A program made the position numbers and the translations under genes. Below are positions 1 to 60,540 of a DNA stretch of 64,000 nt, one piece after another. The notes under the pieces are model-generated. The model saw only the letters and a program-made list of their open reading frames with translations. It ran no database searches and had not been told where the DNA came from. This DNA comes from Macrostomum lignano (lineage: Eukaryota). The stretch's first letter is position 1. Each line of letters begins with the position of its first letter. The stretch lies in contig NIVC01001686.1 in NCBI GenBank assembly GCA_002269645.1, forward strand, positions 1-64,000, written 5' to 3'.

Positions 1-631
1 CAGCAGCAGCAGCAGCAGCAGCAGCCGCAGCTAGTCCGTGCAGGCAGTCAGTCTATTTGTGAATTTTCTGGTGGATCTGAAGAAAACCCGTCCGGCACAG
101 GATTAAGAGAAAGAGACGATCTGTTTTGGGTGAGTATTATCTGCTGTAGAAGTATTGTACACCAGAGTACTTGTGTTACTTGGTAGAGCACAATTCAAAA
201 GCAATGCAAAATCTCAGTGGCATTGTTGGACACAAGCTACAACGCAATGAATAGTAAACACAGCCAGCCTAGCTCAAGGCTAGTAATTTGTTGGGCATTT
301 ATTGGACATTGCAGCCAGGCTATTTTTTGAACAGCATTTGTTGGGTCGCACTTATTGGGACAATACTGATTCTAATCGCGACTACTTCTGAGTTCTGACT
401 TTTCAAAACAGACCCAGCATGTATGTTGAACACGTTCTATTAAAGGGTTCCTTTATAGCCTATTAATGATTACTAAAGCAAGCCTATCTTAATTGATTTC
501 TTTTCCTCGCAGATTCTGAAGTCAGCAACGCCAGCGACATGCCTAAGAGACAAGAATGCGCTTTAACGATCAGCAGCGAGCATTCTGATCTCGCCTGCAT
601 CCGTCATTTGTTCACTTGCTGCTCACAAGCC

Positions 632-681
<50 letters not shown>

Positions 682-1280
682 TATCCGTGCAGGCAGTCAG
701 TCTATTGTGAATTTTCTGGTGGATCTGAAGAAAACCCGTCCGGCACAGGATTAAAGAGAAAGAGACGATCTGTTTTGGGTGAGTATTATCTGCTGTAGAA
801 GTATTGTACACCAGAGTACTTGTGTTACTTGGTAGAGCACAATTCAAAAGCAATGCAACAATCTCAGTGGCATTGTTGGGACACAAGCTACAAACGCAAT
901 GAATAGTAAACACAGCCCAGCCTAGCTCAAGGCTAGTAATTTGTTGGGCATTTATTGGGACATTGCAGCCAGGCCTATTTTTGAACAGCATTTGTTGGGT
1001 CGCACTTATTGGACAATACTGATTCTAATCGCGACTACTTCTGAGTTCTGACTTTTCAAAACAGACCCAGCATTAGTTGAACACGTTCTATTAAAGGGTT
1101 CCTTTATAGCCTATTAATGATTACTAAAGGCAAGCCTATCTTAATTGATTTCTTTTCCTCGCAGATTCTGAAGTCAGCAACGCCAGCGACATGCCTAAGA
1201 GACAAGAATGCGCTTTAACGATCAGCAGCGAGCATTCTGATCTCGCCGCTGCATCCGTCATTTGGTTCACTTGCTGCTCA

Positions 1281-1323
<43 letters not shown>

Positions 1324-1927
1324 TATCCGTGCAGGCAGTCAGTCTATTTGTGAATTTTCTGGTGGATCTGAAGAAAACCCGTCCGGCACAGGATTAAAGA
1401 GAAAGAGACGATCTGTTTTGGGTGAGTATTATCTGCTGTAGAAGTATTGTACACCAGAGTACTTGTGTTACTGTAGAGCACAATTCAAAAGCAATGCAAC
1501 AATCTCAGTGGCATTGTTGGGACACAAGCTACAAACGCAATGAATAGTAAACACAGCCCAGCCTAGCTCAAGGCTAGTAATTTGTTGGGCATTTATTGGG
1601 ACATTGCAGCCAGGCCTATTTTTTGAACAGCATTTGTTGGGTCGCACTTATTGGGACAATACTGATTCTAATCGCGACTACTTCTGAGTTCTGACTTTTC
1701 AAAACAGACCCAGCATTAGTTGAACACGTTCTATTAAAGGGTTCCTTTATAGCCTATTAATGATTACTAAAGCAAGCCTATCTTAATTGATTTCTTTTCC
1801 TCGCAGATTCTGAAGTCAGCAACGCCAGCGACATGCCTAAGAGACAAGAATGCGCTTTAACGATCAGCAGCGAGCATTCTGATCTCGCCGCTGCATCCGT
1901 CATTTGGTTCACTTGCTGCTCCAAGCC

Positions 1928-1981
<54 letters not shown>

Positions 1982-2584
1982 GCTATCCGTGCAGGCAGTC
2001 AGTCTATTTGTGAATTTTCTGGTGGATCTGAAGAAAACCCGTCCGGCACAGGATTAAAGAGAAAGAGACGATCTGTTTTGGGTGAGTATTATCTGCTGTA
2101 GAAGTATTGTACACCAGAGTACTTGTGTTACTGGTAGAGCACAATTCAAAAGCAATGCAACAATCTCAGTGGCATTGTTGGGACACAAGCTACAAACGCA
2201 ATGAATAGTAAACACAGCCCAGCCTAGCTCAAGGCTAGTAATTTGTTGGCATTTATTGGGACATTGCAGCCAGGCCTATTTTTTGAACAGCATTTGTTGG
2301 GTCGCACTTATTGGGACAATACTGATTCTAATCGCGACTACTTCTGAGTTCTGACTTTTCAAAACAGACCCAGCATTAGTTGAACACGTTCTATTAAAGG
2401 GTTCCTTTATAGCCTATTAATGATTACTAAAGGCAAGCCTATCTTAATTGATTTCTTTTCCTCGCAGATTCTGAAGTCAGCAACGCCAGCGACATGCCTA
2501 AGAGACAAGAATGCGCTTTAACGATCAGCAGCGAGCATTCTGATCTCGCCGCTGCATCCGTCATTTGGTTCACTTGCTGCTCAC

Positions 2585-2625
<41 letters not shown>

Positions 2626-3238
2626 GCTATCCGTGCAGGCAGTCAGTCTATTTGTGAATTTTCTGGTGGATCTGAAGAAAACCCGTCCGGCACAGGATTA
2701 AAGAGAAAGAGACGATCTGTTTTGGGTGAGTATTATCTGCTGTAGAAGTATTGTACACCAGAGTACTTGTGTTACTTGGTAGAGCACAATTCAAAAGCAA
2801 TGCAACAATCTCAGTGGCATTGTTGGGACACAAGCTACAAACGCAATGAATAGTAAACACAGCCCAGCCTAGCTCAAGGCTAGTAATTTGTTGGGCATTT
2901 ATTGGACATTGCAGCCAGGCCTATTTTTTGAACAGCATTTGTTGGGTCGCACTTATTGGGACAATACTGATTCTAATCGCGACTACTTCTGAGTTCTGAC
3001 TTTTCAAAACAGACCCAGCATTAGTTGAACACGTTCTATTAAAGGGTTCCTTTATAGCCTATTAATGATTACTAAAGCAAGCCTATCTTAATTGATTTCT
3101 TTTCCTCGCAGATTCTGAAGTCAGCACGCCAGCGACATGCCTAAGAGACAAGAATGCGCTTTAACGATCAGCAGCGAGCATTCTGATCTCGCCGCTGCAT
3201 CCGTCATTTGGTTCACTTGCTGCTCAAGCCGCAGCAGC

Positions 3239-3279
<41 letters not shown>

Positions 3280-3886
3280 TATCCGTGCAGGCAGTCAGTC
3301 TATTTGTGAATTTTCTGGTGGATCTGAAGAAAACCCGTCCGGCACAGGATTAAAGAGAAAGAGACGATCTGTTTTGGGTGAGTATTATCTGCTGTAGAAG
3401 TATTGTACACCAGAGTACTTGTGTTACCTTGGTAGAGCACAATTCAAAAGCATGCAACAATCTCAGTGGCATTGTTGGGACACAAGCTACAAACGCAATG
3501 AATAGTAAACACAGCCCAGCCTAGCTCAAGGCTAGTAATTTGTTGGGCATTTATTGGGACATTGCAGCCAGGCCTATTTTTTGAACAGCATTTGTTGGGT
3601 CGCACTTATTGGGACAATACTGATTCTAATCGCGACTACTTCTGAGTTCTGACTTTTCAAAACAGACCCAGCATTAGTTGAACACGTTCTATTAAAGGGT
3701 TCCTTTATAGCCTATTAATGATTACTAAAGGCAAGCCTATCTTAATTGATTTCTTTCCTCGCAGATTCTGAAGTCAGCAACGCCAGCGACATGCCTAAGA
3801 GACAAGAATGCGCTTTAACGATCAGCAGTGAGCATTCTGATCTCGCCGCTGCATCCGTCATTTGGTTCACTTGCTGCTGCCAAGCC

Positions 3887-3944
<58 letters not shown>

Positions 3945-3947
<3 letters not shown>

Positions 3948-4842
3948 CTGCCTCCGGCCACCACGCCCCCGTTGGAGCGCTGTCTTGCCGCTCTCGACGT
4001 CATCCGGTCTCACCCGGCTGAGCTCGTCATTTACTGCGATGGTTCGGCGGCCGGCGGCTCCGAGGCTGGCGGGGCGGCCGCTGTGGTCACCATCGGAGAC
4101 CCGGCAGTCCCGACGACCGTGGAAGCCCGCACGTCCGCTGGCAGCCGCTACACCAGCTCCTTTGAAGAGAACTCCGCGCTCTGGTCTAGCCCTCGACTAC
4201 CTCCGCTCGCACCCCACGCCCCTGCCATCATCTGCTCTGACAGTCAGTCTCTTCTGCGCGCCCTTCAGCGTCCTTCAGCCGCCTGGCCTCTTCCCCCGCC
4301 TTCCCGCACAACTGCCGCGCTCTCCTGTGGGTCCCGGGTCATGTCGGCATTCGCGGGCAATGAACTCGCGACCGCGCTGCTAACTCCGCTGCCGCCAACG
4401 CCGATGAAGCACCGCGCCCTCAGCATCAGTTTTCCCACTGCCGCCTCGGTGATCCGCCGCACTCTGGTTGACAAGCCGGTCACCCACGCGAGATCTCGTC
4501 TCACCTATGCCTCCGCCGACGCCGAAAAGGAACGTCGCTTATTACTAACCGCAAAGACGCTGTCCTTCTGCCCGGCTGCGCTCCGGCCACTCCAGCCTCT
4601 TCGAGCCTTCCGCGCCCTCATGGACCCCACGGTGGATCCGACGTGCCAAAGGTGCTTCCTCGAACCAGAACACCCTTGAGCACTGGACAGCGTGCCCTGC
4701 TCTCGAGGCCGCCCGCCGTCGCTTCATTGGAGCTCCGCTCTCCCTCAGCAACTTGTCCGATTACCCTGATGGTTTGTCGCGCTGGCCAGGTTCTGCATGG
4801 ATCCTGGGCGCGTTTGGGCCAACTAACAACAACAACAACAAC
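3945..4842 (+). mobile_element. 5'-truncated non-LTR retrotransposon (I-group-like: RNase H + C-terminal Cys/His knuckle), inserted in a CAG tract
   Basis: RNase H motifs YCDGS, SSFEE, ICSDSQS, and WVPGH/GNELA across frameshifts. Then LLARLRSGH-like and CxxC..EHW..C sequence, a short 3' end and an (AAC)n tail at 4825-4842. Both flanks are the CAG tract of the unit starting at 3765. Confidence 0.88.
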
Positions 4843-5465
4843 AGCAGCAGCAGCAGGCAGCAGCCGCTATCCGTGCAGGCAGTCAGTCTATTTGTGAATT
4901 TTCTGGTGGATCTGAAGAAAACCCGTCCGGCACAGGATTAAAGAGAAAGAGACGATCTGTTTTGGGTGAGTATTATCTGCTGTAGAAGTATTGTACACCA
5001 GAGTACTTGTGTTACTTGGTAGAGCACAATTCAAAAGCAATGCAACAATCTCAGTGGCATTGTTGGGACACAAGCTACAAACGCAATGAATAGTAAACAC
5101 AGCCCAGCCTAGCTCAAGGCTAGTAATTTGTTGGGCATTTATTGGGACATTGCAGCCAGGCCTATTTTTTGAACAGCATTTGTTGGGTCGCACTTATTGG
5201 GACAATACTGATTCTAATCGCGACTACTTCTGAGTTCTGACTTTTCAAAACAGACCCAGCATTAGTTGAACACGTTCTATTAAAGGGTTCCTTTATAGCC
5301 TATTAATGATTACTAAAGCAAGCCTATCTTAATTGATTTCTTTTCCTCGCAGATTCTGAAGTCAGCACGCCAGCGACATGCCTAAGAGACAAGAATGCGC
5401 TTTAACGATCAGCAGCGAGCATTCTGATCTCGCCGCTGCATCCGTCATTTGGTTCACTTGCTGCT

Positions 5466-5536
<71 letters not shown>

Positions 5537-6143
5537 TATCCGTGCAGGCAGTCAGTCTATTTGTGAATTTTCTGGTGGATCTGAAGAAAACCCGTCCGGC
5601 ACAGGATTAAAGAGAAAGAGACGATCTGTTTTGGGTGAGTATTATCTGCTGTAGAAGTATTGTACACCAGAGTACTTGTGTTACTTGGTAGAGCACAATT
5701 CAAAAGCTATGCAACAATCTCAGTGGCATTGTTGGGACACAAGCTACAAACGCAATGAATAGTAAACACAGCCCAGCCTAGCTCAAGGCTAGTAATTTGT
5801 TGGGCATTTATTGGGACATTGCAGCCAGGCCTATTTTTTGAACAGCATTTGTTGGGTCGCACTTATTGGGACAATACTGATTCTAATCGCGACTACTTCT
5901 GAGTTCTGACTTTTCAAAACAGACCCAGCATTAGTTGAACACGTTCTATTAAAGGGTTCCTTTATAGCCTATTAATGATTACTAAAGCAAGCCTATCTTA
6001 ATTGATTTCTTTTCCTCGCAGATTCTGAAGTCAGCACGCCAGCGACATGCCTAAGAGACAAGAATGCGCTTTAACGATCAGCAGCGAGCATTCTGATCTC
6101 GCCGCTGCATCCGTCATTTGGTTCACTTGCTGCTGCACAAGCC

Positions 6144-6190
<47 letters not shown>

Positions 6191-6675
6191 TATCCGTGCA
6201 GGCAGTCAGTCTATTTGTGAATTTTCTGGTGGATCTGAAGAAAACCCGTCCGGCACAGGATTAAAGAGAAAGAGACGATCTGTTTTGGGTGAGTATTATC
6301 TGCTGTAGAAGTATTGTACACCAGAGTACTTGTGTTACTTGGTAGAGCACAATTCAAAAGCAATGCAACAATCTCAGTGGCATTGTTGGGACACAAGCTA
6401 CAAACGCAATGAATAGTAAACACAGCCCAGCCTAGCTCAAGGCTAGTAATTTGTTGGGCATTTATTGGGACATTGCAGCCAGGCCTATTTTTTGAACAGC
6501 ATTTGTTGGGTCGCACTTATTGGGACAATACTGATTCTAATCGCGACTACTTCTGAGTTCTGACTTTTCAAAACAGACCCAGCATTAGTTGAACACGTTC
6601 TATTAAAGGGTTCCTTTATAGCCTATTAATGATTACTAAAGCAAGCCTATCTTAATTGATTTCTTTTCCTCGCAG

Positions 6676-6797
6676 ATTCTGAAGTCAGCAACGCCAGCGA
6701 CATGCCTAAGAGACAAGAATGCGCTTTAACGATCAGCAGCGAGCATTCTGATCTCGCCGCTGCATCCGTCATTTGGTTCACTTGCTGCTCACAAGCC

Positions 6798-6848
<51 letters not shown>

Positions 6849-7457
6849 GCTATCCGTGCAGGCAGTCAGTCTATTTGTGAATTTTCTGGTGGATCTGAAG
6901 AAAACCCGTCCGGCACAGGATTAAAGAGAAAGAGACGATCTGTTTTGGGTGAGTATTATCTGCTGTAGAAGTATTGTACACCAGAGTACTTGTGTTACTT
7001 GGTAGAGCACAATTCAAAAGCATGCAACAATCTCAGTGGCATTGTTGGGACACAAGCTACAAACGCAATGAATAGTAAACACAGCCCAGCCTAGCTCAAG
7101 GCTAGTAATTTGTTGGGCATTTATTGGGACATTGCAGCCAGGCCTATTTTTTGAACAGCATTTGTTGGGTCGCACTTATTGGGACAATACTGATTCTAAT
7201 CGCGACTACTTCTGAGTTCTGACTTTTCAAAACAGACCCAGCATTAGTTGAACACGTTCTATTAAAGGGTTCCTTTATAGCCTATTAATGATTACTAAAG
7301 GCAAGCCTATCTTAATTGATTTCTTTTCCTCGCAGATTCTGAAGTCAGCAACGCCAGCGACATGCCTAAGAGACAAGAATGCGCTTTAACGATCAGCAGC
7401 GAGCATTCTGATCTCGCCGCTGCATCCGTCATTTGGTTCACTTGCTGCTGCCAAGCC

Positions 7458-7523
<66 letters not shown>

Positions 7524-8132
7524 GCTATCCGTGCAGGCAGTCAGTCTATTTGTGAATTTTCTGGTGGATCTGAAGAAAACCCGTCCGGCACAGGATTAAA
7601 GAGAAAGAGACGATCTGTTTTGGGTGAGTATTATCTGCTGTAGAAGTATTGTACACCAGAGTACTTGTGTTACTTGGTAGAGCACAATTCAAAAGCAATG
7701 CAACAATCTCAGTGGCATTGTTGGACACAAGCTACAAACGCAATGAATAGTAAACACAGCCCAGCCTAGCTCAAGGCTAGTAATTTGTTGGGCATTTATT
7801 GGGACATTGCAGCCAGGCCTATTTTTTGAACAGCATTTGTTGGGTCGCACTTATTGGGACAATACTGATTCTAATCGCGACTACTTCTGAGTTCTGACTT
7901 TTCAAAACAGACCCAGCATTAGTTGAACACGTTCTATTAAAGGGTTCCTTTATAGCCTATTAATGATTACTAAAGGCAAGCCTATCTTAATTGATTTCTT
8001 TTCCTCGCAGATTCTGAAGTCAGCAACGCCAGCGACATGCCTAAGAGACAAGAATGCGCTTTAACGATCAGCAGCGAGCATTCTGATCTCGCCGCTGCAT
8101 CCGTCATTTGGTTCACTTGCTGCTCACAAGCC

Positions 8133-8195
<63 letters not shown>

Positions 8196-8805
8196 GCTAT
8201 CCGTGCAGGCAGTCAGTCTATTTGTGAATTTTCTGGTGGATCTGAAGAAAACCCGTCCGGCACAGGATTAAAGAGAAAGAGACGATCTGTTTTGGGTGAG
8301 TATTATCTGCTGTAGAAGTATTGTACACCAGAGTACTTGTGTTACTTGGTAGAGCACAATTCAAAAGCTATGCAACAATCTCAGTGGCATTGTTGGGACA
8401 CAAGCTACAAACGCAATGAATAGTAAACACAGCCCAGCCTAGCTCAAGGCTAGTAATTTGTTGGGCATTTATTGGGACATTGCAGCCAGGCCTATTTTTT
8501 GAACAGCATTTGTTGGGTCGCACTTATTGGGACAATACTGATTCTAATCGCGACTACTTCTGAGTTCTGACTTTTCAAAACAGACCCAGCATTAGTTGAA
8601 CACGTTCTATTAAAGGGTTCCTTTATAGCCTATTAATGATTACTAAAGGCAAGCCTATCTTAATTGATTTCTTTTCCTCGCAGATTCTGAAGTCAGCAAC
8701 GCCAGCGACATGCCTAAGAGACAAGAATGCGCTTTAACGATCAGCAGTGAGCATTCTGATCTCGCCGCTGCATCCGTCATTTGGTTCACTTGCTGCTGCC
8801 AAGCC

Positions 8806-8873
<68 letters not shown>

Positions 8874-9480
8874 TATCCGTGCAGGCAGTCAGTCTATTTG
8901 TGAATTTTCTGGTGGATCTGAAGAAAACCCGTCCGGCACAGGATTAAAGAGAAAGAGACGATCTGTTTTGGGTGAGTATTATCTGCTGTAGAAGTATTGT
9001 ACACCAGAGTACTTGTGTTACTTGGTAGAGCACAATTCAAAAGCAATGCAACAATCTCAGTGGCATTGTTGGACACAAGCTACAAACGCAATGAATAGTA
9101 AACACAGCCCAGCCTAGCTCAAGGCTAGTAATTTGTTGGGCATTTATTGGGACATTGCAGCCAGGCCTATTTTTTGAACAGCATTTGTTGGGTCGCACTT
9201 ATTGGGACAATACTGATTCTAATCGCGACTACTTCTGAGTTCTGACTTTTCAAAACAGACCCAGCATTAGTTGAACACGTTCTATTAAAGGGTTCCTTTA
9301 TAGCCTATTAATGATTACTAAAGGCAAGCCTATCTTAATTGATTTCTTTTCCTCGCAGATTCTGAAGTCAGCAACGCCAGCGACATGCCTAAGAGACAAG
9401 AATGCGCTTTAACGATCAGCAGCGAGCATTCTGATCTCGCCGCTGCATCCGTCATTTGGTTCACTTGCTGCTCACAAGCC

Positions 9481-9576
<96 letters not shown>

Positions 9577-10186
9577 GCTATCCGTGCAGGCAGTCAGTCT
9601 ATTTGTGAATTTTCTGGTGGATCTGAAGAAAACCCGTCCGGCACAGGATTAAAGAGAAAGAGACGATCTGTTTTGGGTGAGTATTATCTGCTGTAGAAGT
9701 ATTGTACACCAGAGTACTTGTGTTACTTGGTAGAGCACAATTCAAAAGCTATGCAACAATCTCAGTGGCATTGTTGGGACACAAGCTACAAACGCAATGA
9801 ATAGTAAACACAGCCCAGCCTAGCTCAAGGCTAGTAATTTGTTGGGCATTTATTGGGACATTGCAGCCAGGCCTATTTTTTGAACAGCATTTGTTGGGTC
9901 GCACTTATTGGGACAATACTGATTCTAATCGCGACTACTTCTGAGTTCTGACTTTTCAAAACAGACCCAGCATTAGTTGAACACGTTCTATTAAAGGGTT
10001 CCTTTATAGCCTATTAATGATTACTAAAGGCAAGCCTATCTTAATTGATTTCTTTTCCTCGCAGATTCTGAAGTCAGCAACGCCAGCGACATGCCTAAGA
10101 GACAAGAATGCGCTTTAACGATCAGCAGTGAGCATTCTGATCTCGCCGCTGCATCCGTCATTTGGTTCACTTGCTGCTGCCAAGCC

Positions 10187-10240
<54 letters not shown>

Positions 10241-10850
10241 GCTATCCGTGCAGGCAGTCAGTCTATTTGTGAATTTTCTGGTGGATCTGAAGAAAACCCG
10301 TCCGGCACAGGATTAAAGAGAAAGAGACGATCTGTTTTGGGTGAGTATTATCTGCTGTAGAAGTATTGTACACCAGAGTACTTGTGTTACTTGGTAGAGC
10401 ACAATTCAAAAGCTATGCAACAATCTCAGTGGCATTGTTGGGACACAAGCTACAAACGCAATGAATAGTAAACACAGCCCAGCCTAGCTCAAGGCTAGTA
10501 ATTTGTTGGGCATTTATTGGGACATTGCAGCCAGGCCTATTTTTTGAACAGCATTTGTTGGGTCGCACTTATTGGGACAATACTGATTCTAATCGCGACT
10601 ACTTCTGAGTTCTGACTTTTCAAAACAGACCCAGCATTAGTTGAACACGTTCTATTAAAGGGTTCCTTTATAGCCTATTAATGATTACTAAAGGCAAGCC
10701 TATCTTAATTGATTTCTTTTCCTCGCAGATTCTGAAGTCAGCAACGCCAGCGACATGCCTAAGAGACAAGAATGCGCTTTAACGATCAGCAGTGAGCATT
10801 CTGATCTCGCCGCTGCATCCGTCATTTGGTTCACTTGCTGCTGCCAAGCC

Positions 10851-10907
<57 letters not shown>

Positions 10908-11571
10908 GCTATCCGTGCAGGCAGTCAGTCTATTTGTGAATTTTCTGGTGGATCTGAAGAAAACCCGTCCGGCACAGGATTAAAGAGAAAGAGACGATCT
11001 GTTTTGGGTGAGTATTATCTGCTGTAGAAGTATTGTACACCAGAGTACTTGTGTTACTTGGTAGAGCACAATTCAAAAGCAATGCAACAATCTCAGTGGC
11101 ATTGTTGGGACACAAGCTACAAACGCAATGAATAGTAAACACAGCCCAGCCTAGCTCAAGGCTAGTAATTTGTTGGGCATTTATTGGGACATTGCAGCCA
11201 GGCCTATTTTTTGAACAGCATTTGTTGGGTCGCACTTATTGGGACAATACTGATTCTAATCGCGACTACTTCTGAGTTCTGACTTTTCAAAACAGACCCA
11301 GCATTAGTTGAACACGTTCTATTAAAGGGTTCCTTTATAGCCTATTAATGATTACTAAAGGCAAGCCTATCTTAATTGATTTCTTTTCCTCGCAGATTCT
11401 GAAGTCAGCAACGCCAGCGACATGCCTAAGAGACAAGAATGCGCTTTAACGATCAGCAGCGAGCATTCTGATCTCGCCGCTGCATCCGTCATTTGGTTCA
11501 CTTGCTGCTCACAAGCCGCAGCAGCAGCAGCAGCAGCAGCAGCAGCCGCTATCTGTGCAGCAGTCAGTTAA
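6676..11571 (+). CDS. Putative repeated-exon protein (intact run of poly-Ala/KRKRR modules plus a terminal copy with stop); function unknown
   Basis: Seven consecutive copies (6676-10729 starts) are open from acceptor to donor in one frame, phase 1 at both ends: DSEVSNASDMPKRQECALTISSEHSDLAAASVIWFTCC(S/C)Q-(A)19-34-IRAGSQSICEFSGGSEENPSGTGLKRKRRSVL(G). The copy at 11396 diverges to AAICAAVS-TAA (11569-11571), with AATAAA at 11691. No family recognised; several upstream copies are frameshifted. Confidence 0.4.
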
Positions 11572-11766
11572 TTCATGAGTTTTCTGGCGGAGCTGGTTAT
11601 TTTTTAATTTTCTGAATCGAGAAGCCGATTAACTGTTGTGTGCTTCACTGGAATATTATTCAGAGGACGCATTTTTTGCAGTCTGTTTCTAATAAAATCC
11701 GGTGCAATGACCGCGGTAGAGCTCTAGCATTTGCTTTTTATAGTATTTGTGTATATTCTTTTTCAA

Positions 11767-12022
11767 GCTATGCTGGAATTGTTGGGACAGCCCCATCCAC
11801 ACTGGCTATGGTGGAATTGTCGGGACAGCCCTATCCACACTGGCTATGGTGGAATTGTTGGGACAGCCCTATCCACACTGGCTATGGTGGAATTGTTGGG
11901 ACAGCCCTATCCACACTGGCTATGGTGGAATTGTTGGGACAGCCCTATCCACACTGGCTATGGTGGAATTGTTGGGACAGCCCTATCCACACTGGCTATG
12001 GTGGAATTGTTGGGACAGCCCC
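11767..12022. repeat. 38-bp minisatellite (~7 copies)
   Basis: gctatggtggaattgttgggacagccctatccacactg starts at 11767, 11805, 11843, 11881 and onward. Confidence 0.95.
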
Positions 12023-12695
12023 ATACTATAGTGTGTGCTGGCTTCTGCTATTGTGTGGTTCATTTCCGCATCCTTTTACGTAGCATTCTGTGGGTCCGAA
12101 TAGCTGACATGTACCTTTTGAGTAATTCTAGTGATTGTGTCATAATCAATAAAGTTCATTTTTATGAACAGTGGAGTTTCGCTACAGAATTGTTTTTTCC
12201 CAGTGGCACTAAATGTAGCAAATTTTGTTTATTCAGATCGTAAAATTTTTTTGATATGTGTCAATGTCGTTTGTCTTCGATAACCTTAAAGTCCCTTGCC
12301 ATTTACCATCCTGTCTTCTCTAATCTATGATCGCTGAAATTATCTGGTGAAATTTGACGCGCTGATATTATTGCCTTAGTGGAATTCAGCAAGACACCAG
12401 GGTTTTTTAATTCTGTTTTAGACAAGTATACATGTACAATCTGTTGTGAGTTCAATGCACCTCGAAAAATGCTTTCCAACTGTTTTCAGTAAGCCAAAAG
12501 CATGTTGTCAATAAAAATCTATTTGGTGGGTTGAAAATTGCCTGTGTGGGGACGTGTGTGTGTGTGATTTTTCGTGTGTCGGAGCAGTCCCAATATGTGC
12601 AAGTTTTTGCACACTTGGCCAATAAGTGCCTCGTGCACGTTTGTGTGTGTGTGTGTGTCTGTCTGTCTGTCTGTTTGTCTGTGTATCTGTGTGTC

Positions 12696-13027
12696 TGTCT
12701 CCATATCTACCTGTCTCCATATCTACCTGTCTCCATATCTACCTGTCTCCATATCTACCTGTCTCCATATCTACCTGTCTCCATATCTACCTGTCTCCAT
12801 ATCTACCTGTCTCCATATCTACCTGTCTCCATATCTACCTGTCTCCATATCTACCTGTCTCCATATCTACCTGTCTCCATATCTACCTGTCTCCATATCT
12901 ACCTGTCTCCATATCTACCTGTCTCCATATCTACCTGTCTCCATATCTACCTGTCTCCATATCTACCTGTCTCCATATCTACCTGTCTCCATATCTACCT
13001 GTCTCCATATCTACCTGTCTCCATATC
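12696..13027. repeat. 16-bp minisatellite (~21 copies), preceded by TG/TCTG microsatellite
   Basis: Unit tgtctccatatctacc; the array runs directly into the splice acceptor at 13036. Confidence 0.95.
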
Positions 13028-13036
13028 CACCCCCAG

Positions 13037-15437
13037 GTTCCGGAGAACTTTGCCGACCGGGCCAGACTGCTTGCTGAAGCTGAATACTTCGGCCTGCGCC
13101 ATTTGCAGGTGAGATTTCAGCGGATATTGTGAAACGATAAATTGTCTAATATGCGAGAGGTTTCATAGCATGGACTGTCAATCAAAACCTGAGTGGTACT
13201 CTACTCTCCCGGCATGTGTACATGCACAGACAGACCCCAGACCGTTTGGGGCGGACTGGGGCGGTAAGTTGCGGTCAAACGAAGACCACCCAGAGCTGGG
13301 GGGGGGTCGAGAAGGGATAGAGAAGTGAGGATCGGGGAGAGTTTTGGACTTTGGGGGAAAATGGGAAGAATTATTTTCAAGCTTCGCCTCCCTTCCCCGA
13401 TCCCGCTAGCCAACCAACCCGGGGCTGAATTTCCCGCCCCCCTTCTCCCCTCTCACCGCCTCCTTTGCCTTCCCAGCCCCTCCTGAGCCCTAAGTCCATC
13501 CCACCCTGCCAAGACTCGGCTTCAGCGCTGCAAGCCCTCCCCCTGTTTCTGGCAAGTTGCCAAGCTGTTTAAAAAGCAGTTAACCCGCACTTTTCTACCA
13601 AATCTGGATACGATCTGAGATTGACAAAGGGGAGAGGGGCCGCTTGGCAACTCGCTCTGCACTCCATCTGAGTAGATGGGTCGGTGAGCGACTCGAACAG
13701 AACTCAAGGAGACAGCCGGTCAACTAGAAAACATTTATTGTTCCTATTGATTATATTTTTGCTATACTAGTAGTTTAAATTTGTTTATTATTAAACCAAA
13801 AAAGCATTTTGCGACAAGGTGAGAACAGGTCATGCAGTTTGATGAAAACATGTTTTTAACTGCTCATTCATGACTGAAATTAATCATTGTACATGAGCTT
13901 CATCTGATGCTGTTTATGAGCTTCATCTGATGCTGTTTATGAGCTTGATCTGATGCTGTTTATGAGCTTCATCTGATGCTGTTTATGAGCTTCATCTGAT
14001 GCTGTTTAGGAGCTTCATCTGATGCTGTTTATGAGCTTGATCTGATGCTGTTTATGAGCTTCATCTGATGCTGTTTATGAGCTTCATCTGATGCTGTTTA
14101 TGAGCTTCATCTGATGCTGTTTATGAGCTTGATCTGACACTGTTTATGAGCTTGATCTGATGCTGTTTATGAGCTTCATCTGACACTGTTTATGAGCTTC
14201 ATCTGATGCTGTTTATAAGCTTCTTCTGATGCTGTCTATGAGCTTCATCTGATGCTGTCTATTAGATTCATCTGATGCTGTCTATGAGCTTCATCTGACA
14301 CTGCTTATGAGCTTGATCTGATGCTGTTTATAAGCTTCATCTGATGCTGTTTATGAGCTTGATCTGATGCTGTCTATTAGATTCATCTGATGCTGTCTAT
14401 GAGCTTCATCTGACACTGTTTATGAGCTTCATCTGACACTGTTTATGAGCTTCATCTGACACTGTTTATGAGCTTCATCTGACACTGTTTATGAGCTTGA
14501 TCTGATGCTGTTTATGAGCTTCATCTGATGCTGTTTATGAGCTTTATCTGACACTGTTTATAAGCTTGATCTGATGCTGTTTATGAGCTTGATCTGATGC
14601 TGTTTATGAGTTTCATCTGATGCTGTTTATGAGTTTCATCTGATGCTGTCTATTAGATTCATCTGATGCAGTTCATGAGCTTCATCTGACACTGTTTATG
14701 AGCTTCATCTGATGCTGTTTATGAGCTTCATCTGACACTTTTTATGAGCTTCATCTGATGCTATCTTTGAGCTTCATCTGATGCTGTTTATGAGCTTCAT
14801 CTGATGCTATCTTTGAGCTTCATCTGATGCTGTTTATAAGCTTCATCTGATGCTGTTTATGAGCTTCATCTGATGCTATCTTTGAGCTTCATCTGATGCT
14901 GTTTATGAGCTTCGTCTGACCCCGTCATTCGTATTAGATTTTTATTAGAATCTCAAAAATTACCTGACACCAACTGTGACCTGGCCAATTCCCCAGGAGC
15001 TGCTCACCAGCCACCGCTCCAGAATCAGCGGCCCCGAAGCCATCATCCACCGTCTGGAACTCGACTGCACCTGCCAGAGAGAGGACTCAAAGTTGGCGAG
15101 TACGCCAACCGAGCGCTCCCAGATGGACAGGTGTCGAACGATGCGTCTGGAGCTGCAGGACAATCAGGACAAGTTGAACTACCTCGCCGAGCTGTGCAGA
15201 ATTGGCGGCAGAATTGTCAGCCACAGCAGCAGCATGACGATTGACAGCCAGCCAAGCCCACCTTGCCATCGCAGCTTCGAACGCTACCTGCTCGAGTTCA
15301 GCTTTGTTGATCCCTCCGCTGAGCAGAAGGAGAATGACGGCGCTGGCGCTACTCAGGTCTGCGGCGACTGCGTGGGAGCCCGGCTGCCCTTGGGGTCGCT
15401 TATGGTTGACAAGGCGGTGCCCATTGTGATTGATTGA
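13037..15437 (+). CDS. KCTD-family (T1-type BTB/POZ) protein, 3' exons only
   Basis: Exon 13037-13108 (ccccag|...CAG|gtgaga, phase 0/0) encodes VPENFADRARLLAEAEYFGLRHLQ, matching the end of KCTD BTB domains (LP.DF.E..RL..EA.YF.L..L). It joins in frame to exon 14997-15437 (ELLTSHRSR...ELCRIGGRIVSHSS...FERYLLEF...stop). The last exon could instead end at an internal donor. The N-terminal BTB exon(s) were not found in the window. Confidence 0.7.
13893..14919. repeat. 23-bp minisatellite in KCTD intron (~44 copies)
   Basis: Unit atgagcttcatctgatgctgttt with variants. Confidence 0.95.
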
Positions 15438-16370: not shown

Positions 16371-18346
16371 TCCTCAACCACCTCCGCGGTAGGAAGCCAG
16401 TTTTGCAGCAATAAATTCAGTCAACTCAGGTAAGCTTCAAAGTCACTCTAGCAAAAAATATTGAAATTCAAATTACAGAACTTTGGCAACTTTGGAAAGT
16501 CGAGGTTTTCAATAAAATAAAAGATACAACAAACTTTATTTTGTTTTGTCATTATCGAAATTGTTATAATTAGCAGAAATTTTCATTACAACCACTTCTC
16601 ATCGTGCGTTTTCAAGTTCACGAACTTCAGTCTCAGTGGTGCAGCCTGGCACCCAGTAGTTAAATGTTTTATTTGGTTAGTATTTGTTTTAACTTTATCA
16701 CTCGGTTTTAGTTAGTTTTCTTTAATAAGTAAAAAAATTACTAAGAAGCAACAGCAAGTTGACAACAGAATGCTACCTCACAGCCTTGGGCGCAGTTCTC
16801 TAATCCCTCTGATTGAGGTAAAACTGTACCCACAGGTGTAATAAATTTTACCTCGTGTCACGTAAAATATCGCAACAAGTTTTGTTATAATCGTATTCTT
16901 AATTCCATAATTTACCTAGGAATCCACAATGTCATTGTTAATATTCATATTGCTAAAATTTTTGTTTGATTTAACTACAAAACATTTTGTTTTGTGGAAC
17001 TAAAATTTCATGGCTGAAATTAAAAAAACAATTCTAGATTAAGTTCAAACTTTAATTTAAATGTATTTATTCACACAACTTATTAAAACTTTAACTTTTA
17101 GTTCATTTCGAAAAGGAAATCATACCAGGATTAATAAAAGCTACGAGTAATTAATTGAACTAATTAAAAGTTTAATCTCAATTGTGCTCTCATTTATCTG
17201 CTTCAATATTAAAACTATACAATTAAAACAAATATCATTTGTTAATTAACTAGTTAACTAAAGTGCCACGAAATTTATGAAAAACAATGCTATCGAAAAA
17301 GAGAAGAATTCGTTAATTTTGCTTTCTTTTCCTTTAATTTATTATAACAAATCAAATGTGCTCTCAACCGTGGACGAGATGGCGCCCGAAAGTTTGTAAA
17401 TAGAATTTAGTTTTTACCGTTCCTTAATCGCTAGGCTTAGGTCGTTCCCATACAAATTTATGCATCATTCACGCCATCACGTCGAACAAAATTGAAAATA
17501 AACGCAGCGTTTTGAAAGATCCCGAGAATGTCTGTACAATATTCAATATGGCTATTGCATGGTTTAGTATGGTCGGATAGAGAACCTGCTCTCACTTATT
17601 TTCTCATTAAAAATTCACGCCAATTGTAATAAAATCTTATTCGCTTCAATCATTTCTGTCGCTTTTGCTTTTTTGCTTATCTGATCCGAATCCAAAAATA
17701 ATAAAAATATTAAACCAAAAATCTTTTATTCTAGTGGTTTCTGCACTACTCTACTTAGATCACGATGTGTTAGAAGTGTGTGACGCGTTGTTTTACTTTT
17801 CAGTCTGATTCACTTGAAACTGTCTGATACTTTTCTGTGTTGTATTTTTTGTTAAAATTCAACAGCCAGTTATACTTGGCCGAGTTGCGGACGCGCTTCA
17901 ATGGTACACACTTCTGTATAGATTTGCCTGATCGATCTATTACGTACTTAAACTATTGAAATTGATCAATACATACGATTTGTACCCTTATTTTCTTAGC
18001 CGTTATCAAAACTATCCAACCTATTCAATTTGTTTAAATGCATGTCTACAAGTAGAATTACGAGGCTAAATATTTGTTGTTTTATTTTTTGGCGCTCTCC
18101 CATCTAAACACCCAGCTCTATTGAATGATGCAAGTTTTCCTGAAAGGTACTTCGGCTAGAGGAACAAATATATTTGCTGTCTAATGGGTCATCAACTCAT
18201 AGCTTTTGTTTGAATTTTTTCGTAAATTTGCGTCGCAAAAGATCGTAATATTGACTGACTCCTGGCACTGACGTGCAGTTGACCTACGCAGGAGTTTTCA
18301 TTTGGGGGGGCCGCAACCCTTGGGCGCCAATATTCGGTATCTATAT

Positions 18347-19950
18347 TGGCACCCCTGTCTCGGGTTGGCGCCCCTGTCTCTTCGTTGGCGCCCCTGTCTC
18401 TTCGTTGGCGCCCCTGTCTGTCTTGGGTTGGCGCCCCTGTCTCTTGGGTTGGCGCCCCTGTCTCTTGGTTGGCGCCCCTGTCTCTTGGGTTGGCGCCCCT
18501 GTCTCTTGGGTTGGCGCCCCTGTCTCTTGGTTGGCGCCCCTGTCTCTTGGGTTGGCGCCCCTGTCTCTTGGGTTGGCGCCCCTGTCTCTTGGGTTGGCGC
18601 CCCTGTCTCTTGGGTTGGCGCCCCTGTCTCTTGGTTGGCGCCCCCTGTTTCTTGGGTTGGCGCCCCTGTCTCTTGGGTTGGCGCCCCTGTCTCTTGGGTT
18701 GGCGCCCCTGTCTCTTGGGTTGGCGCCCCTGTCTCTTGGTTGGCGCCCCTGTCTCTTGGTTGGCGCCCCTGTCTCTTGGTTGGCGCCCTGTCTCTTGGTT
18801 GGCGCCCCTGTCTCTTGGTTGGCGCCCCTGTCTGTCTTGGGTTGGCGCCCCTGTCTCTTGGTTGGCGCCCCTGTCTCTTGGTTGGCGCCCCTGTCTCTTG
18901 GGTTGGCGCCCCTGTCTCTTGGGTTGGCGCCCCTGTCTCTTGGGTTGGCGCCCCTGTCTCTTGGTTGGCGCCCCTGTCTCTTGGGTTGGCGCCCCTGTCT
19001 CTTGGGTTGGCGCCCCTGTCTCTTGGGTTGGCGCCCCTGTTTCTTGGGTTGGCGCCCCTGTCTCTTGGGTTGGCGCCCCTGTCTCTTGGGTTGGCGCCCC
19101 TGTCTCTTGGTTGGCGCCCCTGTCTCTTGGGTTGGCGCCCCTGTCTCTTGGTTGGCGCCCTGTCTCTTGGTTGGCGCCCCTGTCTCTTGGGTTGGCGCCC
19201 CTGTCTGTCTTGGGTTGGCGCCCCTGTCTCTTGGTTGGCGCCCCTGTCTCTTGGGTTGGCGCCCCTGTCTCTTGGGTTGGCGCCCCTGTCTCTTGGGTTG
19301 GCGCCCCTGTCTCTTGGGTTGGCGCCCCTGTCTCTTGGTTGGCGCCCCTGTCTCTTGGGTTGGCGCCCCTGTCTCTTGGGTTGGCGCCCCTGTCTCTTGG
19401 GTTGGCGCCCCTGTCTCTTGGGTTGGCGCCCCTGTCTCTTGGTTGGCGCCCCTGTCTCTTGGGTTGGCGCCCCTGTCTCTTGGGTTGGCGCCCCTGTCTC
19501 TTGGGTTGGCGCCCCTGTCTCTTGGGTTGGCGCCCCTGTCTCTTGGTTGGCGCCCCTGTCTCTTGGGTTGGCGCCCCTGTCTCTTGGGTTGGCGCCCCTG
19601 TCTCTTGGGTTGGCGCCCCTGTCTCTTGGGTTGGCGCCCCTGTCTCTTGGGTTGGCGCCCCTGTTTCTTGGGTTGGCGCCCCTGTCTCTTGGGTTGGCGC
19701 CCCTGTCTCTTGGGTTGGCGCCCCTGTCTCTTGGGTTGGCGCCCCTGTCTCTTGGGTTGGCGCCCCTGTCTCTTGGTTGGCGCCCCTGTCTCTCGGGTTG
19801 GCGCCCCTGTCTCTTGGGTTGGCGCCCCTGTCTCTTGGGTTGGCGCCCCTGTCTCTTGGGTTGGCACCCCTGTCTCGGGTTGGCGCCCCTGTCTGTCTTG
19901 GGTTGGCGCCCCTGTCTGTCTTGGGTTGGCGCCCTGTCTCTTCGTTGGCG
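18347..19950. repeat. 20/21-bp minisatellite (~75 copies)
   Basis: Unit ttggcgcccctgtctcttgg(g); source of the 500-600 aa spurious ORFs on both strands. Confidence 0.97.
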
Positions 19951-20319
19951 CGCCACTCCTGTCTCAGCTACATGTAGGCCTGTGGATGCCAGGTCTAAGA
20001 GGTGATAAAAGTTGCGCTCCTGTCATTTTTGTCAGCTTGGTTGCAGCTCTTTCATCTTCAGTTTTTTGACGATCGTGGCCCCCTCCCCCTGCCCCAATCT
20101 GTGTAGGCCATTTGTGTTGTAAAAAAGGCTTTATTCAAAATGCTTTTGCCATTTAGCATGCCGATACCATGAGCATGCAAGGGTTGCCACGCCCATTAAT
20201 TACATGTAATAACTGGCAATTTTAATGTACAAAGGTAATTATAAATTGGTAAACAATATTAGATCTCAGTCTAAATTCCTGCCTTCTAAAATTTATGAGG
20301 TATATCATATTTTTATCCC

Positions 20320-25131: not shown

Positions 25132-27104
25132 TCTCTCCCTCTCCCTCTCACCTTCCCCTCTCTTCTCTCCCTCTCACCTCTCCCTCTCTTCTCTTTCTCT
25201 CACCTCTCCCTCTCTTCTCTTTCTCTCACCTCTCCCTCTCTTCTCTCCCTCTCACCTCCCCTCTCTTCTCTCCCTCTCCCTCTCTTCTCTCCCTCTCTTC
25301 TCTCCCTCTCTTCTCTCCCTCTCACCTCTCCCTCTCACCTCTCCCTCTTTTATCTCCCTCTCACTTCTCCCTCTCTTCTCTCCCTCTCACCTCCCCTCTC
25401 TTCTCTCCCTCTCCCTCTCTTCTCTCCCTCTCACCTCTCCCTCTCACCTCTCCCTCTCACCTCTCCCTCTTTTATCTCCCTCTCACTTCTCCCTCTCTTC
25501 TCTCCCTCTCACCTCCCCTCTCTTCTCTCCCTCTCCCTCTCTTCTCTCCCTCTCACCTCTCCCTCTCACCTCTCCCTCTCACCTCTCCCTCTCACCTCTC
25601 CCTCTTTTATCTCCCTCTCTTCTCTCCCTCTCTTCTCTCCCTCTCACCTCTCCCTCTCTTCTCTCCCTCTCACCTCTCCCTCTCTTCTCTCCCTCTCACC
25701 TCCCCTCTCTTCTCTCCCTCTCCCTCTCTTCTCTCCCTCTCTTCTCTCCCTCTCACCTCTCCCTCTCTTCTCTTTCTCTCACCTCTCCCTCTCTTCTCTC
25801 CCTCTCACCTCCCCTCTCTTCTCTCCCTCTCCCTCTCTTCTCTCCCTCTCTTTTCTCCCTCTCTTCTCTCCCTCTCACCTCTCCCTCTCACCTCTCCCTC
25901 TTTTATCTCCCTCTCACTTCTCCCTCTCTTCTCTCCCTCTCACCTCCCCTCTCTTCTCTCCCTCTCACCTCTCCATCTCACCTCTCCCTCTCTTCTCTCC
26001 CTCTCACCTCCCCTCTCTTCTCTCCCTCTCCCTCTCTTCTCTCCCTCTCTTCTCTCCCTCTCACCTCTCCCTCTCACCTCTCCCTCTCTTCTCTCCCTCT
26101 CACCTCTCCCTCTCTTCTCTCCCTCTCACCTCTCCCTCTCTTCTCTCCCTCTCACCTCTCCCTCTCACCTCTCCCTCTCTTCTCTCCTCTCACCTCCCCT
26201 CTCTTCTCTCCCTCTCCCTCTCTTCTCTCCCTCTCTTCTCTCCCTCTCACCTCTCCCTCTCACCTCTCCCTCTTTTATCTCCCTCTCACTTCTCCCTCTC
26301 TTCTCTCCCTCTCACCTCTCCCTCTCTTCTCTCCCTCTCACCTCTCCCTCTCACCTCTCCCTCTCTTCTCTCCCTCTCACCTCTCCCTCTCTTCTCTCCC
26401 TCTCACCTCTCCCTCTCTTCTCTCCCTCTCACCTCTCCCTCTCTTCTCTCCCTCTCACCTCTCCCTCTCTTCTCTCCCTCTCACCTCTCCCTCTCTTCTC
26501 TCCCTCTCACCTCTCCCTCTCTTCTCTCCCTCTCACCTCTCCCTCTCTTCTCTCCCTCTCACCTCTCCCTCTCTTCTCTCCCTCTCACCTCTCCCTCTCT
26601 TCTCTCCCTCTCACCTCTCCCTCTCTTCTCTCCCTCTCTTCTCTCCCTCTCACCTCTCCCTCTCACCTCTCCCTCTTTTATCTCCCTCTCACTTCTCCCT
26701 CTCTTCTCTCCCTCTCACCTCTCCCTCTCTTCTCTCCCTCTCACCTCTCCATCTCACCTCTCCCTCTCTTCTCTCCCTCTCACCTCTCCCTCTCTTCTCT
26801 CCCTCTCACCTCTCCCTCTCTTCTCTCCCTCTCACCTCTCCCTCTCTTCTCTCCCTCTCACCTCTCCCTCTCTTCTCTCCCTCTCACCTCTCCCTCTCTT
26901 CTCTCCCTCTCACCTCTCCCTCTCTTCTCTCCCTCTCACCTCTCCCTCTCTTCTCTCCCTCTCACCTCTCCCTCTCTTCTCTCCCTCTCACATCTCCCTC
27001 TCTTCTCTCCCTCTCACCTCTCCCTCTCTTCTCTCCCTCTCACCTCTCCCTCTCTTCTCTCCCTCTCACCTCTCCCTCTCTTCTCTCCCTCTCACCTCTC
27101 CCTC
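25132..27104. repeat. ~2-kb polypyrimidine (C/T) low-complexity satellite
   Basis: ctctccctctcac / ctctccctctctt alternation, with almost no purines on the + strand. Confidence 0.95.
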
Positions 27105-27639
27105 TACCGCTCTTCTACTCTCCATCTCCAATCTCCCTCTCCGCTGTCTCGCTACTTCTCATCTCCAGTTTCCCTATAAAGAAGACTACTGATAGCAGTA
27201 ACGCTCTCAGCTGAGCCATAACACATCCCAGTTCCACTTCGTCATACATTCACGTTGATTCCCCCGCAAATGTCAAACATGCAGTGCAATGCAGCAGCTT
27301 AGCGAGTCTCAACAATCTAAGCAAGTCTACATTAGTAGGCCTGTGTTTTTCAATATAATACTATGGGGCAATGCCCAGGACTCAAACTGCTCACTACTCA
27401 GTCTCTCTGTTGCTAAGCCTAAGCTTCCTCATAGCATAGTCCCATTCTGTGGTAAATTTAGCACTGAGATCCTTCTACTCTCCCTGCCACAGCTTTCTGT
27501 TTTGTTTCATCCCAAACTGCTCAATCTAGCCGCCTACTGAACAGGAACTGGGTACAGTCTATTAATTTCTGCACTTCTCGTCCAGGTAGGAACTCTGCAG
27601 TCTCCAATCTCCATCAATTACTGCTCTAATCTTCTATCT

Positions 27640-31518: not shown

Positions 31519-31821
31519 AACGGTTCGGATGGAAGCAGACAAATGATTTAAAGCGATTTAACTGGTCAGCTATACATGCAGTCTATTGGCTCAATGCTGC
31601 CCTTATCGTGGACAAATATTGATAAAACATACGTGCTACACTAATCTATATGCAGCTACATAACTGCCATCCCTTTTTCAATAGCATTTATTGTCAGAAA
31701 TTGTATGCGAAACTGCGGACCACTTGACCACTGCTGAACCTCCTGGCATTCGTTGGCGCAATGTCCCCGACTCTCTCCCTAGACCTAAAGATCCTGAGCT
31801 CGATTCCGAGCACACTCTACC

Positions 31822-60300: not shown

Positions 60301-60540
60301 TACTCTGTTCTCCCTACTCTGCTCTCCCTAGTCTCCTCTCCATACTCTCTCCTCTCCCTACTCTGCTCTCTCTACTCTCTCTCCTCTCCCTACTCTGCTC
60401 TCCCTACTCTGCTCTCCCTACTCTGCTCTCCCTACTCTCCTCTCCCTACTCTCCTCTCCCTACCCTCTCCTCTCCCTACTCTCTCCTCTCCCTACTCTCC
60501 TCTCTCTACTCCCTACTCTCTCTACTCTCTCCTCTCCCTC
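57345..60540. repeat. 14-bp pyrimidine-rich satellite (~3.2 kb)
   Basis: Unit ctactct(g/c)ctctcc, lying between the convergent 14-3-3 and MCT 3' ends. Confidence 0.96.

Follow-up and report, generated by a model that had tools for sequence, protein, structure and literature searches.

Satellites that are carried by or derived from transposons are represented by Tetris and DINE-TR1 in Drosophila and by the Helitron-like 'pearl' elements with internal satellites in bivalves, and macrosatellites or variable number tandem repeats that bear exons or open reading frames (ORFs) by the human kringle-IV-2 repeats of LPA, D4Z4/DUX4 and the Olduvai exon doublets of NBPF. Among the mobile elements associated with microsatellites, the R1-clade LINEs (long interspersed nuclear elements) Waldo and Mino target (ACAY)n/(AC)n. 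Chlamys Penelope-like elements target (C)n, and Crypton-type (tyrosine-recombinase) elements integrate by recombining a terminal motif with a near-identical target (PMC9977147). The subject of this work is an array of exon-intron cassettes at positions 1-11575 of a 64,000-nucleotide stretch of Macrostomum lignano DNA (contig NIVC01001686.1, assembly GCA_002269645.1, forward strand), the whole of which is called the window in the following. We consider it reasonably probable that this array is a satellite which arose from an exon-intron unit, is transcribed and spliced without coding constraint, and is borne by a repeat element. It would constitute the internal array of a dispersed, probably mobile, non-autonomous element composed of a left arm of ~2.46 kb, n copies of a ~640-bp cassette and a right arm of ~1.08 kb, with (TG)n at both ends.

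As in the transposon-borne satellites, tandem repeats lie between conserved arms, vary in copy number per insertion and appear to be spread by the element, the units are homogenised within arrays, and motifs are common to the repeat unit and the element termini; what distinguishes the M. lignano unit is that it is a full symmetric-phase exon-intron cassette with consensus sites, spliced in vivo, and that (TG)n is found at every copy. With LPA, D4Z4 and NBPF the array shares a coding-like unit, in-frame changes in copy number that would alter product length, and variation driven by unequal exchange. However, LPA, D4Z4 and NBPF are host genes at a single locus, for which products or constraint have been demonstrated, whereas the M. 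lignano array is multi-locus, resides in a repeat element and shows no coding constraint. The embedding of every copy in one kind of microsatellite recalls Waldo, Mino and the Chlamys Penelope-like elements, yet such microsatellite-targeting retrotransposons show 5' truncation, while in M. lignano all left ends (7/7) are complete and the introns are retained. Cryptons are approached in that a long perfect inverted repeat and a clear target duplication are both lacking, and in that GTTTGTG at both junctions resembles the target; unlike in Cryptons, the element and its surroundings yielded no recombinase gene, and an imperfect 38-bp inverted repeat with a possible 4-bp GTTT duplication describes the ends equally well. 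The combination is a variation on transposon-borne satellites and exon-bearing macrosatellites and no separate category.

The cassette and its array

The first-pass annotation had placed a tandem array of symmetric exons at 1-11700, and 17 head-to-tail cassette copies with a period of 643-706 bp indeed occupy 1-11575 on the plus strand, the first clipped by the window edge and the last truncated and diverged. The cassette comprises a consensus acceptor, a 257-318-nt exon with a (GCA)12-31 tract, a GTGAGT donor and a 387-nt intron. Tandem Repeats Finder reports (AGC)n tracts at ~650-bp intervals from position 1 to 11546, and a repeat search recovers 15 long in-register copies at spacings of 643-706 bp, with a single spacing of 1588 bp caused by an insertion. 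Anchoring on the two splice-like motifs delimits 17 exon copies and 16 introns of ~387 nt each, with 16/16 array acceptors reading TTTCTTTTCCTCGCAG followed by ATTCTG and 16/16 donors reading TTTTGG followed by GTGAGTAT. The intron at 10341-10728 is representative in that it runs from GTGAGT through TACTAAAG to TTTCTTTTCCTCGCAG over 387 nt and contains three copies of the motif GCAYTTVTTGGGMC. Outside the (GCA)n tract, identity between units exceeds 99%, and there are almost no substitutions within the window.

The intact exons measure 258-318 nt, a multiple of three, and have phase 1 at both ends, so that each copy is spliceable in frame to the next. They are open solely in the frame that reads (GCA)n as alanine (the other two frames contain 2 and 5-6 stops), and their product is (D)SEVSNASDMPKRQECALTISSEHSDLAAASVIWFTCC(S/C)Q-Ala14-34-IRAGSQSICEFSGGSEENPSGTGLKRKRRSVL, with KRKRR present in each open module. 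Phase, tract length and KRKRR had been described in these terms before and hold for the intact exons, but the picture of an acceptor, a donor and one open frame in each unit stands only in part, as the 16 acceptors, the 16 donors and eight exons conform to it, while six of the 14 uninterrupted full copies are broken, the partial copy at the left edge is frameshifted, one copy is split and the last has diverged. The chance of an open non-repeat stretch of ~71 codons is ~3% per frame, and the open frame by itself is therefore only modestly above chance; it is the splice signals, taken with public models of spliced transcripts, that establish the exon reading.

Following the partial, frameshifted first exon at 1-129, the fifteen full exon copies start at 513, 1165, 1807, 2468, 3112, 3765, 5353, 6022, 6676, 7336, 8011, 8684, 9359, 10065 and 10729, all on the plus strand. 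The eight open ones are the phase-1/phase-1 exon at 2468-2725 with 14 Ala and a run of seven consecutive copies, which is led by 6676-6948 (19 Ala) and continues with 7336-7623 (CCCQ variant), 8011-8295, 8684-8971 (CCCQ variant), 9359-9676 with the longest tract (34 Ala), 10065-10340 and 10729-11007, the last with an internal ATG at 10755-10757 (MPKRQEC...). The copies at 513-778, 1165-1421, 1807-2081, 3112-3377, 5353-5634 and 6022-6288 are broken by deletions of 1-2 bases, mostly in short homopolymer runs, one deletion being common to three units. Nearly all short deletions and all broken exons lie in window 1-6500, and the right 5 kb holds the seven perfect exons consecutively; the left-half damage reflects either an older, decaying half of the array or a poorer consensus quality there.

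Read-through from an exon into its intron meets a stop seven codons beyond the donor. The array is closed by a diverged unit without donor at 11396-11571, in which similarity ends past ...EFSGG and a TAA stop is found at 11569-11571, with the sequence of an AATAAA poly(A) signal 3' of it at 11691-11696 (plus strand). In the copy L001, one of fourteen array loci of the assembly Mlig_3_7 (L001-L014) that form the comparison set, the corresponding last exon reads ...AGSQLIDEFSGRAGYFLSF followed by a stop. In the window copy the last diverged unit provides both the stop and the AATAAA signal.

The copy at 3765-4965 is split within its (GCA)n tract by the insertion of ~0.9 kb, a GC-rich sequence at 3946-4842 on the plus strand that we read as the 3' part of a retroelement. 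Its ORF (3948-4676, ...VIYCDGSA...) is RNase H-like, matches Pfam RNase_H with E=0.018 and has as sole relative among 5.8 billion proteins searched the metagenomic RNase_H protein P0031 (PF00075). The insertion sits exactly within the (CAG)n tract, into which its (CAA)n tail continues, and may be a LINE using triplet repeats as target or primer; no further copies of the 3946-4842 fragment were found in the window or in the 14 Mlig_3_7 loci.

Arms, termini and dispersal of the element

Every Mlig_3_7 locus displays left arm, array and right arm in one layout. The left arm of 2463 bp lies outside the window and is complete in all seven left ends, and the right arm of 1076 bp corresponds to window 11576-12650 (plus strand), being 98-99% identical to the right arms of L001, L003, L005, L006, L007, L013 and L014. 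Where both arms bound it, an array holds 6-9 full exons, and arrays that run off the contig hold up to 21. Homology ends at the identical base in seven left and nine right junctions, every one of which adjoins TG-rich sequence, mostly (TG)n runs, the left junction reading ...(tg)n GTGTGTTT GTGCATTAGGCATTTCTTGGGAC... and the right junction ...GGCCAATAAGTGCCTCGTGCAC GTTTGTG(tg)n. The flanks outside the element are unrelated apart from the duplicate pair L007=L011, which gives at least 8 distinct sites, with copies in a myosin intron (same strand), at a TIR_2 gene (antisense), beside cathepsin L and beside eIF5. An origin of the extra copies as homeologues is ruled out, as homology stops at one base everywhere and the flanks are unrelated.

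The ends of the element pair as an imperfect 38-bp inverted repeat (29 matches, score 29 against 14.9 +/- 2.1, maximum 28, in 500 shuffles), and GTTT/GTTTGTG occurs directly at both ends, masked by the (TG)n context. In the window the right terminus (12587-12638, minus strand) consists of an inverted copy of GCAYTTVTTGGGMC at 12587-12600 and the right half of the imperfect 38-bp terminal inverted repeat, ending in ...CTCGTGCAC, which is followed by GTTTG(TG)n; a (TG)n/(TGTC)n microsatellite at 12639-12708 adjoins the element end. One possible reading of the ends is that of inverted repeats with a 4-bp GTTT duplication, and an equally good one is Crypton-like recombination of the terminal GTTTGTG with a (TG)n target, according to the model in PMC9977147.

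The 14-nt motif GCAYTTVTTGGGMC, with the core TTGGGAC, has 46 matches in the 64-kb window (0.22 expected by chance), all of them within the element (span 334-12600). It is present three times per intron, as a variant in a 38-bp minisatellite of the right arm (11767-12021, plus strand, 6.7 copies), which holds ATTGTTGGGAC as a relative of the intron motif, and in inverted orientation near both termini, that is at the right end and as a 21-nt copy near the left end (L001 4519-4539). The copy number of the 38-bp minisatellite visibly varies, and it is many-fold longer in L014. The motif resembles a putative subterminal binding site, and the intron that bears it is the most conserved part of the unit.

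The arms contain no ORF longer than 143 amino acids and no Pfam match, and no transposase or recombinase gene was found in or near the element. The element is dispersed and probably mobile, and we read it as non-autonomous and copied at the DNA level, the last because introns are retained and 5' truncation is absent from the seven left ends. The cassette itself would represent a former exon with its intron that was amplified by unequal exchange.

An artefact of assembly, in which a repeat was collapsed or mis-joined and the genome has no array of this structure, is hardly credible. In its favour, run-length indels are concentrated in the first 6.5 kb, and the (GCA)n tracts differ in length, with 12-31 triplets (median 17) in the window and 3-27 (median 9) in the Mlig_3_7 arrays. 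The longer tracts reflect either a true expansion in another line or locus or collapse in the older assembly. The same architecture and the same arms are, on the other hand, found on 12 independent contigs of an independent assembly, and transcripts match.

Splicing and the fate of the reading frame

A query of two modules returned 30 protein matches, all of them (30/30) from M. lignano, whose names are 'uncharacterized', 'secreted protein' or spurious ones taken from unrelated domains. Several show the junction ...KRKRRSVL(D/A)SEVS(N/H)ASD..., and others are mixed-frame junk. The NCBI matches (BOX15_Mlig...) represent the assembly Mlig_3_7, which was annotated from RNA-seq (StringTie/TACO) and a de novo transcriptome and subsequently with TransDecoder (PMC5730564). 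Among them, P0007 is the exact translation of three consecutive exons of the L003 array joined at the predicted GT-AG sites, P0004 shows the same unit-to-unit joining in L002 and ends at an in-frame stop within a unit, and P0040 (130 amino acids, many identical models) consists of one whole exon between the 3' portion of the preceding exon and the 5' portion of the following one, with two unit-to-unit junctions. Unit-to-unit cis-splicing at the predicted GT-AG sites is real at the family level, and the absence of spliced reads across units, which the first-pass annotation had named as refuting its reading, is contradicted by NCBI models spliced at the predicted junctions. In the module the unit-to-unit junction peptides are SVLDSEVSNASDMPK and SVLASEVSNASDMPK, and a peptide of the module proper is AGSQSICEFSGGSEENPSGTGLK.

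Models of the P0040 type are cut at (CAG)n tracts, and the genome encodes 11 Ala at L012 where the model has 7, which indicates that one assembled transcript was mapped onto many arrays. A polycistron of spliced-leader trans-spliced mini-genes, one per unit, with the stop seven codons into the intron and ATTAAA near the intron end, was considered and found without support; the regular 130-amino-acid NCBI models at first resembled mini-gene cuts, and proved to be one transcript split at (CAG)n and repeatedly mapped. The literature and supplements searched contain no mention of the array gene identifiers or of the repeat.

The existence of spliced transcript models also speaks for an unlikely alternative, a genuine lineage-specific multi-copy protein gene, the length of whose product would be set by the number of units, exon skipping and (GCA)n slippage. 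The product would be nuclear, with KRKRR as nuclear localization signal (NLS), or secreted and processed, with VIWFTCC-polyAla as signal or membrane anchor and RKRR as convertase site, and the broken units and arrays would be pseudogenes or sequencing errors. A selection test inside the window is impossible, as its units are almost without substitutions, and was replaced by a comparison of 13 arrays. Over these 100/147 exons are open, which together with the seven consecutive open exons at 6676-11007 and a last unit with in-frame stop and subsequent AATAAA is in favour of a protein gene. Every array with at least 10 full exons nevertheless contains several broken ones. In L002 a TGG>TAG stop (ASVI*FTCC) has been amplified to 11 of the 16 exon copies, seven of which are otherwise intact; one such copy lies in L004. 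Of the aligned units, 12/116 carry the stop.

Variant counts are based on these 116 aligned units from 12 arrays, with 213 bp of non-repeat exon and 387 bp of intron. Substitution variants are commoner in the exon (24/213) than in the intron (22/387; odds ratio 2.1, p=0.016), and indel variants, which in the exon shift the frame, are equally frequent in both (20/213 and 36/387; odds ratio 1.0, p=1). Of 23 exon substitutions five are synonymous, 17 non-synonymous and one nonsense, at a synonymous expectation of 22% (p=1; few events). The mean pairwise substitution divergence between loci amounts to 1.13% and 0.77% in the two exon halves, 0.41% in the intron, 0.59% in the right arm and 1.84% in the left arm. 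No coding constraint is detected, and the synonymous share equals the neutral expectation. Substitutions accumulating in exon and intron alike without preservation of the frame had been named beforehand as the observation that would speak against a protein, and this is what the comparison of arrays found; the modular nuclear protein tuned by copy number that was proposed from the window sequence is consequently not supported.

The tests of constraint comprise few events, and errors of assembly may account for some of the run-length indels. Independent of both caveats are the stop amplified through an array, the equality of the indel load and the insertion of a retroelement, and it is these, together with exons that are no better conserved than the introns, the neutral ratio of synonymous to non-synonymous changes and the several broken exons per larger array, that argue against the protein gene, as do the copies in introns of unrelated genes in both orientations and the absence of any domain, fold or homologue in the searches described below. 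Divergence of units is 0.2-0.5% within arrays and 0.4-1.1% between arrays, and array-specific variants (D/A, N/H, W/stop) are present. The pattern is that of concerted evolution, and the array is head-to-tail, of high identity and variable in copy number, as satellites are.

Cumulatively, the satellite born from one exon-intron unit, which the first-pass annotation had offered as the second of its two readings, fits these data and is extended by the dispersed element at its at least eight (TG)n-flanked sites and by splicing in vivo. Arrays are transcribed and their consensus sites used for unit-to-unit cis-splicing, as is seen at the family level. The copies are homogenised within arrays and decay neutrally, with nonsense and frameshift variants spreading, (GCA)n slipping and a retroelement having landed in one unit. 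The poly-Ala/KRKRR frame is most likely an inherited by-product and not a maintained protein.

Relatives of the module and surrounding sequence

With respect to the product, KRKRR matches the NLS pattern (K-K/R-x-K/R) and the R-x-K/R-R convertase pattern equally. Its codons lie in the purine-rich run AAAGAGAAAGAGACGA, the end of which is 10 nt 5' of the donor, and purine-rich runs of the AAAGAGAAAGAGACGA kind beside donors promote exon definition. The description of KRKRR as classical NLS-like is correct only as a pattern match, and the same bases may equally be a splicing-enhancer-like element and the same residues a convertase site. The conserved purine-rich stretch that codes for KRKRR and the strong splice signals may serve exon definition at the RNA level. 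The hydrophobic VIWFTCC with the poly-Ala tract reaches a Kyte-Doolittle mean of 1.6, which is borderline, and UniProt automatically names several models that start at internal methionines 'Secreted protein'. These names and the 1.6 window can be cited for a secreted product of a protein gene; the hydrophobicity of VIWFTCC/poly-Ala probably explains the names, and the repeated internal hydrophobic segments argue against a simple secretory precursor. The UniProt names Dymeclin, UCH, Rho-GAP and SANT on array-only fragments are apparently spurious.

Pfam searches with the modules, the arms and the second family described below yielded only low-complexity or repeat-summed noise (PF14442, QIL1, L35p), the PF14442 label on database entries being a summed low-complexity score at threshold, and Rfam gave no match over the whole window. 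An AlphaFold2 single-sequence model of 2.5 modules is uninformative (mean pLDDT, the predicted local distance difference test, 42). The statement of the first-pass annotation that no known family is recognisable is therefore accurate as far as Pfam is concerned, although the modules are already deposited in UniProt and NCBI as M. lignano hypothetical proteins. A profile search of 1.84 billion representative proteins found no credible homologue outside M. lignano. The sole match from another organism, P0035 (Caenorhabditis remanei XP_053583940.1), is a nine-module repeat protein with a junction-like SKRLRSILPADVSERSD resembling KRKRRSVLASEVSNASD; its score is the sum of nine weak junction-motif matches and was judged to be due to chance, probably inflated by repetition.

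Within M. lignano a second family, P0033, P0036 and P0037, consists of at least 10 modules of SEVESSADAS...PPAQQQPP...SANAKRKRRSAQA, with the module junction ...AKRKRRSAQA joined to SEVESSADAS... and the triplet tract read as glutamine and not alanine. Beyond the last ~31 residues and the junction this family has no significant similarity to the window module, and its tail weakly resembles the element's right arm. In P0029, a unit of 44-47% identity is spliced to a canonical one, with the frame and the KRKRRSVL end kept. Neither the diverged unit of P0029 nor the second family occurs in any of the fetched Mlig_3_7 loci, and a word-based protein search with a P0036 segment for the DNA of the second family gave no match. 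P0036 (UniProt A0A1I8J6G4) is in itself an ab initio model in which a second-family array is combined with ~300 unplaced residues and cadherin repeats, and represents an annotation chimera.

The open frames of these diverged relatives speak most strongly for some past or master-copy constraint and can be claimed for the protein gene as well, qualified by an ascertainment bias, as only open frames reach protein databases. On a further reading, which we regard as quite unlikely, the modular frame encodes the element's own product, for instance a nucleic-acid-binding or nuclear-targeted accessory protein, which is selected only in few active master copies, the inserted copies decaying neutrally as is usual in transposon families. 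Neutral decay within the family would be compatible with it, as would the open frame and junction motif kept across F1, P0029 and P0033, the weak homology between the right arms of the second family and the element, and an element without any other ORF longer than 143 amino acids. Apart from the ascertainment bias, which applies here too, it has to contend with the absence of similarity to known transposon proteins and with a between-family similarity so limited, to the last ~31 residues and the junction, that it could be conservation of splice signals; moreover, we know of no precedent for a variable-number poly-Ala module protein among transposition proteins. A bolder proposition is an undescribed class of DNA-level mobile elements that targets (TG)n and whose only gene is a self-expanding string of symmetric exons, with selection in master copies on either the spliced, variable-length poly-Ala/KRKRR protein or the cassette itself, which would be competent for splicing and serve in host introns as a portable trap for exons and terminators. 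Such selection would explain why frame and junction motif persist in two or three families that have diverged deeply, and we nevertheless regard the proposition as a long shot.

Several of these observations weigh against a spliced satellite without coding constraint in a mobile element. The much-diverged P0033/P0036/P0037 family is open through at least 10 modules, and the P0029 unit likewise keeps its frame, a pattern that a master copy under selection would be expected to leave. Two thirds of the exons remain open, and the frameshifts may partly be assembly errors, most of them being run-length changes in repeats that are hard to polish. The transcript models apparently derive from one transcript mapped to many loci, so that transcription is claimed for the family and not for the window locus. 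Mobility is deduced from the copies, an empty site, a clear target-site duplication and a transposase not having been found.

To the right of the element, from 11700 to 63700, the window contains more than 25 separate minisatellite arrays with units of 13-40 bp, several of them 1-3 kb long and interleaved with short gene exons, as exemplified by 18346-19951, 25133-27141, 31821-33800, 38242-40319 and 57377-60528. This richness agrees with a simple and tandem repeat content of 15% in M. lignano (PMC5730564). Exons of different 14-3-3 proteins at 51251-51541 and 54719-55006 (plus strand; Pfam 14-3-3, E ~1e-42 each) lie ~3.5 kb apart and are probably tandem paralogues. Directly after the element and a 16-bp minisatellite, an exon-like VPENFADRARLLAEAEYFGLRHLQ at 13037-13110 (plus strand) finds its best PDB matches in KCTD16 BTB domains, at only E=0.1; if it belongs to a KCTD-like gene with upstream exons left of the window, the whole element would lie in an intron of that gene in sense orientation. 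Two further short ORF pieces, without Pfam match at E<=0.01, may resemble the start of a Cys-loop receptor ligand-binding domain (37352-37470, plus strand) and a monocarboxylate-transporter-like membrane protein (61931-62784, minus strand).

With respect to database content, entries derived from these arrays number ~30 in UniProt and at least 20 in NCBI, and the chimeric P0036 with its cadherin C-terminus comes from them as well. Array-derived models can be flagged as repeat-derived, and the element, with defined termini and a (TG)n context, is curatable in M. lignano. If the proposed origin is true, a whole exon-intron cassette can act as a satellite monomer and be carried genome-wide by a repeat element. 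Introns of unrelated genes would thereby be seeded with dozens of strong, in-frame-compatible splice sites together with a terminal exon and a poly(A) signal, and exonisation, premature termination and misannotation would readily arise from the cassettes of the arrays. M. lignano is amenable to transgenesis, and the splicing of the cassette is directly testable in it.

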